Shown: in pieces, positions 2,717 through 64,000 of the stretch
How positions within the stretch are numbered: position 1 is the first letter of the stretch
Layout of the letters: the number at the start of each line of letters is the position of its first letter
Assembly (NCBI GenBank): GCA_965637545.1
Contig: OZ281500.1
Span: 22,010,001-22,074,000 of the forward strand
Direction of reading: 5' to 3'
DNA: 64,000 bases
Source of the DNA: Phallusia mammillata
Lineage: Eukaryota
Program-made: the position numbers and the translations under genes
Notes under the pieces: generated by a model
Database searches by the model: none
What the model saw: only the letters and a program-made list of their open reading frames with translations
Told to the model about the DNA's origin: nothing

Positions 2717-5337
2717 CATCGGAACAATCAGCTTCGTTTTCGATAAGGTTTAACCCTGTTTCTTTATTCTCTATGCTGTCAGCGTTGTGCTCAATAGTTG
2801 TAGCCGGTTCGTGTACTTTCAAAGTATTTGATTCCGTTTCTACTGAGACACATGTACCGTATTCAGTGTGGACAGCAAATTCCAGGTTGGTAACCTTATT
2901 TTGTTTCGTTGCGGCGATCGGTTCGATACATATGTGAATAACGGGTTCGCTGTCTTTAAGGAATTCTTGCTTCTTGTTTTCTACACTGATATATGGTTTG
3001 TTGCCTGTGACAAAATCTATGAGAAAATCTCTGGAAAAGTCTGGTGTGCTCTCTGTGCTGGTACCAGGTTTATTCTCGGGGTCATTGTTACCCGCTTCGT
3101 ATTCTGTGAGAAAATCTATCAGGAAATCTATGGTAAAAACTTGTATGTTTTCTTCACTGGTACGTGGTTCCTGTTTTGTGCGGGTACCCGGTTTGTTGTC
3201 TAAGAGCAAAACTTGCTTGTTTTCTGAGCTGGTACCCGGTTCATTCTCTGTGTCATTGGTACCCGGTTCGTTCTCTGTGTCAATGGTACCCGGTTCGTTC
3301 TCTGTGACAATGGTACCCGGTTCGTTCTCTGTGTCAATGGTACCTGGTTCATTTTCTGTGTCATTTGTACCCGGTTCGTTCCCTGTGTCAATGGTACCCG
3401 GTTCGTTCTCTGTGTCAATGGTACCCGGTTCGTTCTCTGTGTCAATGGTACCCGATTCGTTCTCTGTGTCAATGGTACCCGGTTCGTTCCCTGTGTCAAT
3501 GGTACCCGGTTCGTTCTCTGTCAGAAAATCTTGACTATTGTTTTCTGTGTTGGTACCGGGTTTGTTGTCTGTGTCAGCATTATCCAGTTTGTTGTCTGTC
3601 AGAAAAACTTGTTTGTTTTCTGCACTTGTACAAGGTTCGATTCCTATGTTGGCACCCGAAATTATTTTATTTGAACTGCGTTTCAGTTCGTTTTCCGAAT
3701 CTGTGCACATTTTGTTCCCAATACCCACATCGAGTGTGTTTTTAGGAACCAGTTCATTGCGCTTTGGTTCCAATAATAAAAGGGTTTCTTTCTTATCGGC
3801 ATTATCAGCTTCTGTCTCGCTGCTTCCTCCAAATAGCAAGCGGAAACTACTTGTCATGCTTGGCGCTCCATAGGAAAAAGGGGCGTTTCCACCAAAGCTT
3901 GTCGTTCTTTTAGCTGCAGAAAAGTCACAGTTACAAAAAATGAAAACATTTAAATAATGTGTCTAAGTGTGTTTTGATATCTTAACCTGTAACGAATAGC
4001 ATTGTGACTGTGTTAGTTGTTGGGTTTTGCAGATCTAGAGCTGCTTTACAAAAAAATCAAGAAATTAGAAAAACTTCCAAATGTAAATCCTAAAGATCTC
4101 GCGGATAAATTGCTGGAATCATTGTTGGGTCTGCTGATTATGGATCTGTTAATACATTTTTTTATTGTTTTCATGCAGTGTTAATTTGTCAGATAAATGT
4201 GTTGTCAATAACCACCACGTCTGTCATCAAGAAAATCGTTAAAAATACTACCCTACACTGTGATACATGTAACCTTGTTATGGGGTTACCAGACGTCCGA
4301 AATTTCCAGGACATGTTCGGAATTAGAGCGCAAAATCTGTGTCTGGAAATATTTTTTTAAAACGTTTGTAATTTCCGGAATTTTATATTTTAACAACAAG
4401 TAGCTTACCTACAATAGTTTTCACAATTCTTTTTATGTGGGATAAAACGTGTACATTATAGCGGCTGTCCGTTTTATTTTGATGTACGATGCACGTACCG
4501 CGTATTCAAGCGACTTCGCGTCTCAACAGCTGACAATACTCTAAAAGGACCTGACCGGATCTTGTAACATTTTTCGTTTTGTATCTTATTTAGAAACAAA
4601 ACTGCACTTTTTCCTCTGTGATAGTAATAATATTTATGAAAAATAGCACTTTTTTGATTGGTAACGTGTAACACATGCCTTATAATGCATTGTAACGAAA
4701 CTTTGGTGTCGCCAATAATCGTTATTGAAACCGTCCGGAATTTTGCCTATGCAGGTATGGTAACCCTAGGGCCTATTGAAGGTGCCATACCGAAACAGCC
4801 GGTCACCAAGCATTCACCATATGGCAAGGCGTGGCCGACAGAAATCTAGCCTACGCTGGGATTCTTACCCACGACAAATCGTTTTGCAAGTTTCACAGGG
4901 AAAGGATCCAGATAACAGAAACTTTACAGCTATTTTGAACAGCTGTTCACTTACCTATTTGCAGTAAGAAGGCTTTCGAATGCGTGTGGCCGTGTATATC
5001 CACGTCTGCTCCTCATTTTTATCGAGTATCCATCGTTGGTGGTTGTAAACTGGCGAGAAGGCCAGTACGTAACCATATCCACTTCAACATTTTTCACCTT
5101 TCCCATCTTTTCAAGCACTCGAAACATGTACAGCCTTCTGTTGTCGATGCTGTAATATTTTCCATCGCGTATTGCTACGTCCATTCGGGGTATTTGGTCA
5201 GCAGACGTTTTGCCAGCTAATATATCGTCTATTGTTTCATTTACACTCTTACCCCTTCGAAACTTCCAGTTAATGCTGTCTTGCATAAATCTTATTTCTG
5301 ATGGAGCTAAACTTTTTTTCGAGTTAAAATCAAACAT
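2717..5337 (-). CDS. PB1: ParB/Srx-fold toxin-like domain + FG-containing/acidic TENEPG-repeat tail (partial spliced model)
   Basis: Exon 1 5337-4955 (YSIDNRRL; phase-2 donor AG|GTAAGT); phase-2 acceptor at 4145 (SIISRPNNDSSNLSARSLGFTFGSF, donor unresolved); large exon 3913-2717 in frame with ORF 2700..3857 (phase 1/1); terminal exon not found. Confidence 0.7.
3200..3520. repeat. 30-bp coding minisatellite (TENEPGTIDT-type decapeptide)
   Basis: About 10 tandem units of GGTACCCGGTTCGTTCTCTGTGTCAAT-type sequence; translation visible in ORF 2700..3857. Confidence 0.9.
4770..4885 (-). mobile_element. Degenerate copy of the tRNA-headed SINE-like element, in PB1 intron 1
   Basis: Shares CCAAGCATTC..CCATATGGCAAGGC..AAATCTAGCC..ACCCACGACA with 48240-48402 and 21560-21690. 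Confidence 0.55.
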
Positions 5338-5465
5338 GTTTGTGGTCTGATAACTGATGCTACGTTATGCCAATGTGATTTCCTTCATGAACGAACCAAG
5401 CCTTCCTAGGCCCGTTCAAACTCTCCACCCCGTATAAGCAACACATCGGCGGAACAGTAAACAAT

Positions 5466-5476
5466 GGGAAAGTCCC
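5466..5476. promoter_or_regulatory. kappaB-type site upstream of PB1
   Basis: GGGAAAGTCCC, ~130 bp upstream of ATG 5337. Confidence 0.55.
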
Positions 5477-5975
5477 GACAGCGAAACTTTACAGCAATCT
5501 CGCCATCCTGAGTAAAACCAACAGAGTGAACGACATCAAAATTGTCGTTATTATACTGAGGGCAGCTGAAGGCGTAAAATAACAATTACTTCAACAAAAG
5601 AAGCACAGAATCTCTTTAATACAGCAAGTATTTACAGACAAATAAAAATAATTGCCAAAAAAGTTCAGTTTCCGCTGGAGTCCATCGTTTTAAGCTTTTT
5701 CAGTTGTGGCTCATCTGCAAAAAAGGCATATAATTCAGGCGATAGTCAAGGTCCTCAATGCTAAAGATGGGTAACAATTGCAGAGTATTACTATGCTGGT
5801 AGCTTAACTCTCTTAAAAACGATATTTACTTTTTGTGCTAATTAATGTGCAGGCGTAGCCTAGTAACTGTAGGTAAAACGCTTAGTTCCATAGCACCTAT
5901 TTCCACGACATTTGCCATTGTATAAGCATGTTAGCAAACCAAAGAGCCAATATTGTTGAATTCTTCCAAAGCAAG

Positions 5976-62264: not shown

Positions 62265-62488
62265 TCACATTATGGGAAATTTTGTTTTAGTTAAAGTAAG
62301 GAAAACACCACCACTACTACCATCCCCCGCAGGAGTTGTTAGTATTGGGAGAAACTGTTGTCCAAAGTAGTCACTGCAGGCTTGTGATAGTTTCGTTCCA
62401 AAACACCCAGTGTTGTTCGCAGTTTGACTGGTCGTTGATACAAACCCAAGGTATTTTGGATGCGTCGATCGCTGAATTTGCTGCAAAC
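62265..62488 (-). CDS. Tentative terminal exon of PB20 (via micro-exon 62894-62878)
   Basis: Same translation as ORF 48470..48691. Confidence 0.35.
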
Positions 62489-63013
62489 CTATGAAAATCT
62501 AAAACCCTTGCTTGTTAAAACGCTTGAAAGTACAAAACAGTAGATAGTTTACCTTTTTCAGGCAATAAACTGTTGTGCCACATCCAGTAATGATAATACA
62601 TGTTAACAAGCATTGATGACGCCATGTTAGTCATGTCAAAATATATTCAGTGGTTGTCAAACGCACATCTACCAGTTTTTGTTGCCATGCGTTATGTCGT
62701 TTTTTTATTAGTTTGGTCTTTTCATGTTGTTACTAAGTGTTGTCAAGGGAGTGTCAAAAAAAAGAACCCACGCATCCGACAACAAACCACCGAAGGAGGT
62801 ATTCGAACTCATGACCCCTTTTATAAAATAGCCTTAATAATTTTATTTTTTGTGTAGTGTTAAAAGTTTTTTTTTACCATTTGGTTGCATTGCCCTGTTT
62901 TTGTTAGACTAGAAGTATATTTTTGTCATTTGCTTGCATTATTCTGTTTTATTAGATTAGAAGTATATTTTTTTAACCTTGTTATTTGAAATCGTATTTT
63001 AGAAACAACATAC

Positions 63014-63417
63014 CTTTGTTGTAAAGCATATGAAGAGTTATCTTGCAATGTGTCAAACGTATGATCGTAGGTCTCGTAGTGGCGTCCTCTCACATCGATA
63101 CTGTATCCGTCGTTGTTTGTTGTAAACTTTTTAGACGAAATATGTGAGACACAAATTACATCAATTTTGCGTAGTTTTCCTCTCTTTTCCAGCACACGAA
63201 ACACGTAAAGACGCCGGTTGTCCAAACTGTAATACTTTTTATCCTTAACGCAGACACGAATTTTTGGAAAAACTGATGCTTTCATTGAACCCCTTTCTAT
63301 TTTCCTAATAGCCTCATTGACACTTCCGCCTTTTTTGAATTCGCGTCTTATGCTGTCTTGAGTGAACCTGATTTCACTTGGAGCTAAGCGCATTGTATTG
63401 TTACCGGTATGCGACAT
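63014..63417 (-). CDS. PB20: ParB/Srx-fold exon 1 (protein identical to PB17)
   Basis: ORF 62926..63489 translation equals 49132..49695; phase-2 donor AG|GTATGT. Confidence 0.85.
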
Positions 63418-64000
63418 TTCTGAGATTAAAAACCCAGCTACAAACCTTTTCTGACCAGCTAGCATCCAACTTATAACACTTATAGGCAACCTATGTGCAA
63501 TAAGGCGTGGTGTGACGTATTTACTATTTTAATTTTGTGTGGTGCATTCATCGGTAAAAATGTTTAGTCATAGGCAACCTATGTGCAATAAGGCGTGGTG
63601 TGACGTATTTACTATTTCAATTTTGTGTGGTGCATTCATCGATGAAACGGTTTGGTCATAGACAACATACGTAATGAGGCATAATGTGAAGTTGCTTTTA
63701 ATACAGTTTCGACTTTTGTAGTGACAAGCTCGGAAATTTTTTTCTTTATCTGGTATAGTTGAAAGTAATATGAATGACACTTAAGTTGTCGTTTGTACGC
63801 GGAGAAGATCGGAATTGTAAATGTAAATTGTAATTTGTAAAATTTTGTAATCTTTTTTTCGAATTGTAATTTTTTACTACACCATGACAAGAAAATATGA
63901 GTTATAGCCTATGCAGTGGTGAGATTTAGCCGGTTCGCACCGGTTCTATAGATCCGTCACGCGTAATTTTATGAGATCAGCGAGCGGTTAGCATTACTGG

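Follow-up and report, generated by a model that had tools for sequence, protein, structure and literature searches.

A 64-kb stretch of the Phallusia mammillata genome (G000:C7:22010001-22074000, hereafter the window) is occupied over nearly its whole length by one gene family, whose members all share one ~120-amino acid (aa) domain that we identify as Tox-ParBL1, a toxin tip with the ParB/sulfiredoxin (Srx) fold. It contains most of a tandem array of nuclear genes of the ascidian, which spans ~85 kb in all. Both the identity and the anatomy of the domain are well supported. For the reading as a whole, a tandem array of Tox-ParBL1 heads with a predicted nucleotide chemistry, joined to tails that would address them to different compartments of the cell, we put the probability at roughly 0.7. 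A preliminary description of this DNA had taken the family for a possibly undescribed innate-immune system; the family is not undescribed, as the presence of the domain in metazoans was published in 2012 (PMC3482391). The size of the array, the design of N-terminal head and address tail, and the missing immunity partner are undescribed as far as literature searches reach.

Copies were called by tblastn, with two of the copies as queries, and from a list of open reading frames (ORFs), which together confirmed an earlier count of 20 stop-free copies and four relics. The window sequence contains no N, has a G + C content of ~35–43% throughout, and the ORF list holds no other conserved ORF besides the domain and tail exons. 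The copies are arranged in three blocks, with nine on the minus strand (4951-26644), then three on the plus strand (27513-33463) and then eight on the minus strand (39393-63489). The array reaches past the window, from C7:22005729 to 22090427, and comprises ~30 genes in a row, 20 of them intact inside the window. A profile search of the whole 240-Mb genome returned 53 matches, ~36 of which were near full length and without stops, with smaller clusters found on C6 (five copies), C7 at 17.99 Mb, C2, C5 and C4.

Alignment of 18 copies (alignment A1, mean column identity 59%) recovered the three motifs noticed earlier, in the forms PS.IRF.Q, YS.DNRRL and [FW][TS]T.[ND]DG.S. Invariant positions in this alignment include P6, S7, R10, F11, Q13, Y57, S58, N61, R62, R63, L64, T94, G98, S100 and H111. 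All 20 intact copies retain N61, R62, R63, R10, Q13, T94, G98, S100 and H111, and likewise the residues common to bacterial tips. The arginine motif reads DNRR throughout, or GNRR in one of the 20 copies, and at position 15 (QD[ST]I) 18/20 copies have Ser or Thr and 40/40 sampled bacterial tips have Ser.

These features agree with Tox-ParBL1 as set out by Zhang et al. 2012 (Biol Direct 7:18, PMC3482391), whose passages on this class define it by three features. The fold is predicted to be that of ParB, an N-terminal Ser (or Thr) that classical ParB lacks is conserved, and an [NT][RT][RT] motif, mostly N-R-R, corresponds to the arginine motif of ParB. The type example is MafB NGK_2271 of Neisseria gonorrhoeae, the carriers are MafB, RHS, FilH and HINT proteins but also proteins of “several metazoans”, and an HHpred probability of 93% to Thermus ParB is reported (PMC3482391). 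The agreement extends beyond the motifs to the carrier types and to the metazoan presence. Of the class assignment in the preliminary description, the kinship with C-terminal tips of bacterial polymorphic toxins stands, whereas the class is Tox-ParBL1 and not Tox-ParB. Classical Tox-ParB shares the ParB fold and the position as C-terminal tip of RHS and FilH proteins, and is defined in the relevant passages by DGHHR (PMC3482391), whereas the window copies have DNRR, lack the His pair and give no match to ParB_N.

Structure prediction carries the fold assignment. An AlphaFold2 model built on alignment A1 reached a predicted local distance difference test score of 90.7 and a predicted template modelling score of 0.86, and its top 50 Foldseek matches in the PDB were all ParB/Srx-fold proteins (Atu1540, Noc, ParB, KorB, sulfiredoxin, SerK, SbnI and PadC; E 2e-3 to 0.5, probability at most 0.99). 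VIA-align of the same set gave Z-scores of 5.1–7.7 over residues 1-93/105, with a best root-mean-square deviation (rmsd) of 2.5 Å over 89 residues. Individual Z values are modest, and no competing fold was seen, which bears out the fold expected earlier. In the model, NRR opens helix 61-72 behind the hairpin 47-58, at the position of ParB GERR, and hhalign pairs YYSLDNRRL with YEIIAGERRF of a Burkholderiaceae ParB in a register that is not itself significant; the placement of NRRL at the ParB loop, already proposed in the preliminary description, is that of Zhang et al. 2012 as well. In the CTP-binding N-domains of ParB, Noc and KorB and in the ATP-dependent phosphotransferases sulfiredoxin, SerK and SbnI, which share the fold, this is the position of ParB GERR and of the Srx GCHR phosphate-binding site (PMC3482391). 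Unlike these proteins, the window copies have no helix-turn-helix (HTH), dimerisation domain, ParA partner (all three already noted as missing) or peroxiredoxin-type Cys motif, their sequence similarity to them is insignificant, and TTxNDGxS stands in place of ParB box III. The encoded proteins consist of the ~120-aa head and disordered tails. Two candidates from the searches were rejected, namely DUF6551, a sub-threshold hint in the Pfam scan (E 0.0077; the other hints were chance), and the KMT2C/D SET-domain, which gave the only PDB sequence-search matches with single sequence and profile alike (E ~0.05) and was spurious. There is no Pfam or NCBIfam model for Tox-ParBL1.

Bacterial homologues in the profile search are ~40% identical to the ascidian domain and are labelled as filamentous hemagglutinin or bear PT-HINT or PT-TG regions. 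In Paraburkholderia the domain makes up the last ~100 residues of an RHS protein that is at least 2031 aa long, and is followed by an overlapping 89-aa ORF of family DUF7660, a pair that recurs in Trinickia. DUF7660 is a candidate immunity family for the ParBL1 toxin tip, and is not among the Tox-ParBL1 immunity partners named in the passages of PMC3482391 on this class, which place Imm-SUKH and Imm44 genes next to the domain in bacterial toxin loci. DUF7660 ORFs behind the tip lie at 6302-6571 of L001 (E 1.5e-25) and 1269-1745 of L002 (E 4e-24), both Burkholderiaceae. Only these two bacterial loci were returned because the search patterns were derived from the animal consensus. Structural neighbours in the ESM Atlas were PT-HINT, RHS/YD-shell, MafB class 3 and PT-VENN clusters, at a template modelling score (TM-score) of 0.67–0.77 and an rmsd of ~2 Å, with mollusc and cnidarian clusters alongside them in the same list; the link to MafB is structural only. 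The same head is predicted (TM-score 0.77) for one cluster from cnidarians (53 members, 316 aa), with C2H2 zinc fingers in 23% of its proteins; this would be another eukaryotic architecture of the Tox-ParBL1 family. An immunity-like gene was not found in the window, and the DUF7660 and SMI1/KNR4 models match nothing genome-wide. Such an adjacent gene defines the bacterial system, not the domain itself.

The genes are built as eukaryotic genes with introns, as had been claimed. A Met lies 0–12 codons ahead of the domain in every copy, with the same start in the other genome clusters, which leaves no space for a signal peptide. Directly behind the domain, all intact copies have a phase-2 GT donor of consensus type, with c23, where a stop precedes the donor, as the exception; c23 could encode either a tail-less protein or be a gene beginning to decay. 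What looks like a TAA stop in the 12 copies at 4.9–33.5 kb belongs to the donor AG/GTAA (the slash marks the exon boundary), and the eight copies at 39–63.5 kb have AAG/GTATGT-type donors slightly further downstream, likewise in phase 2. Direct two-exon joins in subfamily A fail on phase, which led to mini-exon models for g27 and g30, predicted from paralogue conservation, canonical GT-AG sites and reading frame. When the introns of g27 and g30 are aligned, a mini-exon flanked by an acceptor and a donor stands out as conserved. The g27 model joins 27513-27874 (domain), 28059-28129 (71-nt mini-exon) and 28308-29359 (acidic tail) into an open frame of 494 codons, and g30 joins 29807-30165, 30241-30326 (86-nt mini-exon) and 30504-31516 into 485 codons; the length difference between the two mini-exons is 15 nt and thus divisible by three, and both joined frames are open. 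By the same search c09 has one weak mini-exon candidate, whereas c05, c18 and c25 have none.

Two-exon joins were obtained for three further genes, bringing those with open in-frame joins to five (g27, g30, c43, c45 and c59). In c43, exon 43410-43042 (domain, donor CAG/GTTAGT) joins 42548-42110 (acceptor TTTTAG/), and both exons match its closest relative, the Phallusia mammillata protein P0126 (CAB3263313.1), at 81% identity in the domain and 49% in the tail. In c45 (45986-45559 joined to 45197-44984) and c59 (59780-59353 joined to 59000-58787) joining at the best polypyrimidine acceptor keeps the frame and yields ~213-aa proteins.

The tails end in several types of putative address signal. 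KRRK-type ends occur in g27, g30 and c33, with the acidic tail of g27 ending in AKRRKICYED and that of g30 in AKKRTKI. The linker of c45 ends in the CaaX box CVIL and that of c59 in CIIL, and the tail of c43 has a Tyr-rich linker and a C-terminal transmembrane helix. A sign of decay is seen downstream of c39, where a CaaX-like ORF (37869-37648) runs beyond its CSCIIC box. Candidate tail exons downstream of c05, c09 and c18 carry 11–21 copies of a 27-nt unit (TENEPGT[SI]D) and start at polypyrimidine-AG acceptor-like sites. FG-nucleoporin-like stretches (FSFGAAS, FSFGGSS, VFQFGSSPFSK, SFGGNAPFSYG) were observed ahead of the acidic 9-aa repeats at 7935-8294, 6427-7863, 17070-17351 and 3800-3962. 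No homologues were found with a profile built from the three KRRK tails, and Pfam domains were detected neither in the window tails nor in annotated full-length animal relatives. Among homologues with an N-terminal domain, a regular-expression screen found 18 CaaX-type ends, ~16 of them typical CaaL (often SWC[TAV]IL or CC[VT]IL), and a hydropathy screen found 13 C-terminal transmembrane or hydrophobic helices; annotated proteins of Ciona, Styela, Clavelina, Octopus and Saccostrea are among those bearing anchors. The same predicted anchor types recur across tunicate and mollusc homologues.

An exhaustive profile search of 1.84 billion proteins returned 3307 cluster representatives at E <= 0.001, 1183 of them at E <= 1e-10. 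The named animal matches that were looked up came from tunicates (Ciona, Styela, Clavelina, Phallusia) or molluscs (Octopus, Argonauta, Tegillarca, Mya, Saccostrea), and all were annotated as “uncharacterized”. Some of the annotated tunicate and mollusc proteins (P0121, P0123-P0125, P0127, P0129, P0130) have two or three ParBL1 heads in one polypeptide; in Ciona and Clavelina the second heads are degenerate, with NRR gone. Such proteins may have genuine tandem domains, or their gene models may fuse neighbouring genes of an array. Another eukaryote has a contig (L008) that carries two copies in 5 kb.

A quick maximum-likelihood tree united 41 bacterial tips in one clade (Shimodaira–Hasegawa-like approximate likelihood ratio test, SH-aLRT, 99) and placed 17/18 window copies together in two subfamilies, with c43 paired with Phallusia P0126 (SH-aLRT 99). 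The row for L001 was disregarded, and five short eukaryote-type ORFs in the tree carry bacterial labels in error. The clustering of the window copies indicates that the array grew by duplication within the ascidian lineage and not by repeated transfer. As the tree is unrooted and was sampled by similarity to the animal profile, it gives no direction, number or date of transfer. The domain is under purifying selection, with a median ratio of nonsynonymous to synonymous divergence (dN/dS) of 0.31 (range 0.15–0.52, 68 unsaturated pairs). Synonymous divergence (dS) is saturated in 120/190 pairs, indicating that most paralogues are old. Recent duplication is also seen, as 44396-50206 and 58189-64000 form a segmental duplication of 97.9% identity and several further blocks are 87–98% identical. 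The birth-and-death evolution proposed in the preliminary description is therefore retained as regards amplification, recent duplicates and relics, and is corrected as regards tempo, as old paralogues under purifying selection imply a slower turnover.

From this anatomy we propose that a bacterial toxin tip became the N-terminal head of intracellular proteins, without signal peptide and without the bacterial delivery region, and that the exons behind the phase-2 intron encode fast-evolving disordered tails ending in varied address signals. The head would bind a nucleotide or phosphate ester in a pocket formed by RF[TS]QDS, DNRR and TTxNDGxS, the site where ParB binds cytidine triphosphate and sulfiredoxin adenosine triphosphate, and the bound head may perform phosphoryl transfer or phosphodiester cleavage. 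The tails would anchor this one enzyme either at membranes or in the nucleus. A possible conflict or defence function is our preferred reading of the role, an immune role being one of several possibilities.

The likeness to bacterial Tox-ParBL1 lies in the domain itself, with its predicted ParB fold, the Ser/Thr of RF[TS]QDS and N-R-R. In bacteria, however, the domain is the C-terminal tip of RHS, FilH/CdiA, MafB and HINT-type toxins, whereas the ascidian domain is N-terminal, lacks a delivery or pre-toxin region, and has no immunity gene adjacent or genome-wide. Other additions on the ascidian side are a conserved extension with a His (T.xH[TA]F), which bacterial tips lack, and, behind the domain, an intron and eukaryotic address tails. 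The C-terminal Tox-GHH of teneurins and the bacterial-type deaminases are likewise bacterial toxin tips that were taken up by animals and are under selection (PMC3482391). Teneurins retain the complete YD-shell carrier and serve as receptors at the cell surface, whereas here only the tip is kept, heading small intracellular proteins encoded in an array.

Several observations weigh against this proposal. Pfam ParB_N (PF02195) matches no copy genome-wide, though it matches ParB in control bacteria, and no Pfam, NCBIfam or PADLOC family matches the domain above threshold. Against a thin ParB profile of four sequences hhalign gave a probability <1%, and as these sequence-only tests give no link to ParB, the fold assignment rests on the predicted structure and the published HHpred result. 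No biochemical activity is reported for any Tox-ParBL1 member, our literature searches having yielded only the 2012 paper, and the Pfam scan found a sensor domain in none of the animal homologues, with nothing tying the family to immunity. The KRRK, CaaX and transmembrane signals are sequence-based predictions only, and the joins of the FG-like and acidic-repeat exons (minus strand) to domain exons are putative. Sequencing runs were checked for a 6-kb stretch (27400-33399), where the only possible RNA signal came from contigs of three small runs from one study, whose type is guessed. These contigs lie at 32767-33369 and comprise the upstream region and domain of c33. No run recorded as RNA holds this stretch, and splice joints were not seen in the reads placed on it. 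The three small runs hint at transcription, and could equally be an open-chromatin-type library. A DNA-like run covers the whole 6-kb stretch, and an independent run holds 95% of its sampled words. At position 32944, runs X1-X3 read T, and the assembly and run X4 have C, which is probably a polymorphism between individuals.

The same Tox-ParBL1 heads and address tails might instead form a family of housekeeping or regulatory enzymes or switches, for example a sulfiredoxin-like repair phosphotransferase or a ParB-like nucleotide-gated switch at membranes and nucleus. We consider this unlikely. Steady purifying selection on mostly old paralogues would suit such a family, yet housekeeping enzymes are rarely kept in tandem as at least 30 paralogues, along with relics and segmental duplicates of very recent date. 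Relatives occur throughout tunicates and molluscs, including the close Phallusia relative of c43, which again would suit a housekeeping role, whereas none of the named matches in the samples came from vertebrates or model animals and tail homologues outside the lineage were not detected. The Pfam scan of animal homologues showed no sensor, death-fold, TIR or LRR domain, and other eukaryotic ParB/Srx proteins such as sulfiredoxin serve housekeeping (PMC3482391). The nearest bacterial relatives, however, are toxin tips paired with immunity-like genes.

A more specific version of the defence function is that tunicates and molluscs keep an expanded set of toxin-derived ParB-like enzymes as standing intracellular effectors, with interchangeable tails that pre-position identical catalytic heads at membranes, through a prenyl or transmembrane anchor, or at the nucleus and its pore, through KRRK or FG-like tails, where they would attack the nucleic acids or nucleotides of microbes, viruses and mobile elements. 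This is speculative and, in our estimation, quite improbable as it stands. If true, these standing effectors would constitute a layer of innate defence without a described animal counterpart, and would reveal the chemistry of bacterial Tox-ParBL1.

We regard it as highly improbable that the genes are selfish toxin-antidote or meiotic-drive-type elements, in which a linked product would neutralise the head and the killing of non-carriers would let the elements spread. A domain of toxin descent, tandem amplification with presence/absence-type turnover, and the kin discrimination served by bacterial polymorphic toxins (PMC3482391) would be in keeping with this. The window nevertheless holds no antidote candidate, since ORFs other than the domain and tail exons are short and lack conservation, the DUF7660 and SUKH models have no match genome-wide, and long-lived paralogues under purifying selection with a Phallusia relative of c43 misfit drivers of fast turnover. 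That the array is not a working one, through bacterial contamination, an assembly artefact duplicating one gene or a field of pseudogenes, is hardly credible: a 5.8-kb block that is 97.9% identical to another reaches the window end, four copies have decayed to relics, and early damage is seen in c23 and the c39 tail, whereas the G + C content of ~35–43%, conserved GT-AG introns and animal-type tails, the 95% of sampled words held by an independent run, dS >0.2 with dN/dS ~0.3 in most copies, and homologous families annotated in four other tunicates all speak against it.

Table 1. Copies, relics and candidate tail exons of the Tox-ParBL1 array, in positions of the window. Open copies are given in brackets; a slash marks the exon boundary.
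Feature	Position	Strand	Remarks
c05 exon 1, ATG then directly Tox-ParBL1 domain	4955..5337 (4951-5337)	-	donor AG/GTAAGT
c09 exon 1, domain	8799..9166 (8795-9166)	-	donor GG/GTAAGC
c11 exon 1, domain	11591..12018 (11587-12018)	-	D60 to G
c13 exon 1, domain	13446..13807 (13442-13834)	-	recent duplicate of c18, dS 0.07
c18 exon 1, domain	17920..18281 (17916-18281)	-	
c22 exon 1, domain	21794..22173 (21790-22173)	-	
c23, open domain	22907..23365	-	in-frame stop five codons 5' of conserved donor
c25 exon 1, domain	24730..25088 (24726-25088)	-	
c26 exon 1, domain	26259..26626 (26255-26644)	-	
g27, three-exon model	27513..29359 (27513-27878)	+	
g30, three-exon model	29807..31516 (29699-30169)	+	
c33 exon 1, domain	33101..33459 (33038-33463)	+	homologous KRRK tail ORF at 34333-35382
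c39 exon 1, subfamily B	39433..39857 (39393-39863)	-	donor CAG/GTACGT
c41 exon 1, subfamily B	41069..41505 (41053-41583)	-	donor AAG/GTATTT
c43, two-exon model	42110..43410 (42889-43410)	-	
c45, two-exon model	44984..45986 (45519-46040)	-	
c49 exon 1	49220..49623 (49132-49695)	-	donor AAG/GTATGT
c54 exon 1	54220..54665 (54159-54665)	-	
c59, two-exon model	58787..59780 (59313-59834)	-	in segmental duplicate that also holds c45
c63 exon 1	63014..63417 (62926-63489)	-	protein identical to c49
Relic	18778..19062	-	three in-frame stops, NRR motif gone
Relic	12846..12899	-	N-terminal fragment only (PSQIRFTQNDI)
Relic	50795..50878	-	N-terminal fragment only, within duplicated block 50789-52119
Relic of c43-like copy	57286..57536	-	split over two frames; decayed transmembrane-tail ORF downstream, 56204-55974
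Candidate tail exons downstream of c05	2700..3962	-	FG-like stretch and 27-nt (9-aa, TENEPGT[SI]D) repeats
Candidate tail exons downstream of c09	6424..8294	-	FxFG-like stretches (duplicated 488-nt unit) and 20 copies of 27-nt repeat
Candidate tail exons downstream of c18	15610..17351	-	FG-like stretch, basic stretch and 27-nt repeats

Other repeated elements were observed among the genes. A promoter-proximal 88-nt tandem repeat lies directly upstream of c49 (49688-49872, 2 copies), c54 (54684-55299, 7 copies) and c63 (63482-63666, 2 copies). ARAGORN detected three 76-nt tRNA-Ser(GGA)-like elements on the minus strand (48328-48403, 53380-53455 and 62123-62198) inside duplicated blocks; these are short for tRNA-Ser and may be tRNA-derived heads of short interspersed elements. 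The intron of c43 (~42975-43010) holds the box-B-like sequence GGTTCGAACCC.

Tox-ParBL1 is a large family without Pfam model, solved structure or reported activity in either bacteria or animals. Here an invertebrate chordate keeps dozens of selected copies with their predicted active-site residues intact, coupled to distinct predicted localisation signals, and the array is a further case in the short list of bacterial toxin domains adopted by animals. As Ciona and Phallusia are experimental systems, the family offers a tractable entry point, and results obtained there would bear on how bacterial toxins kill.

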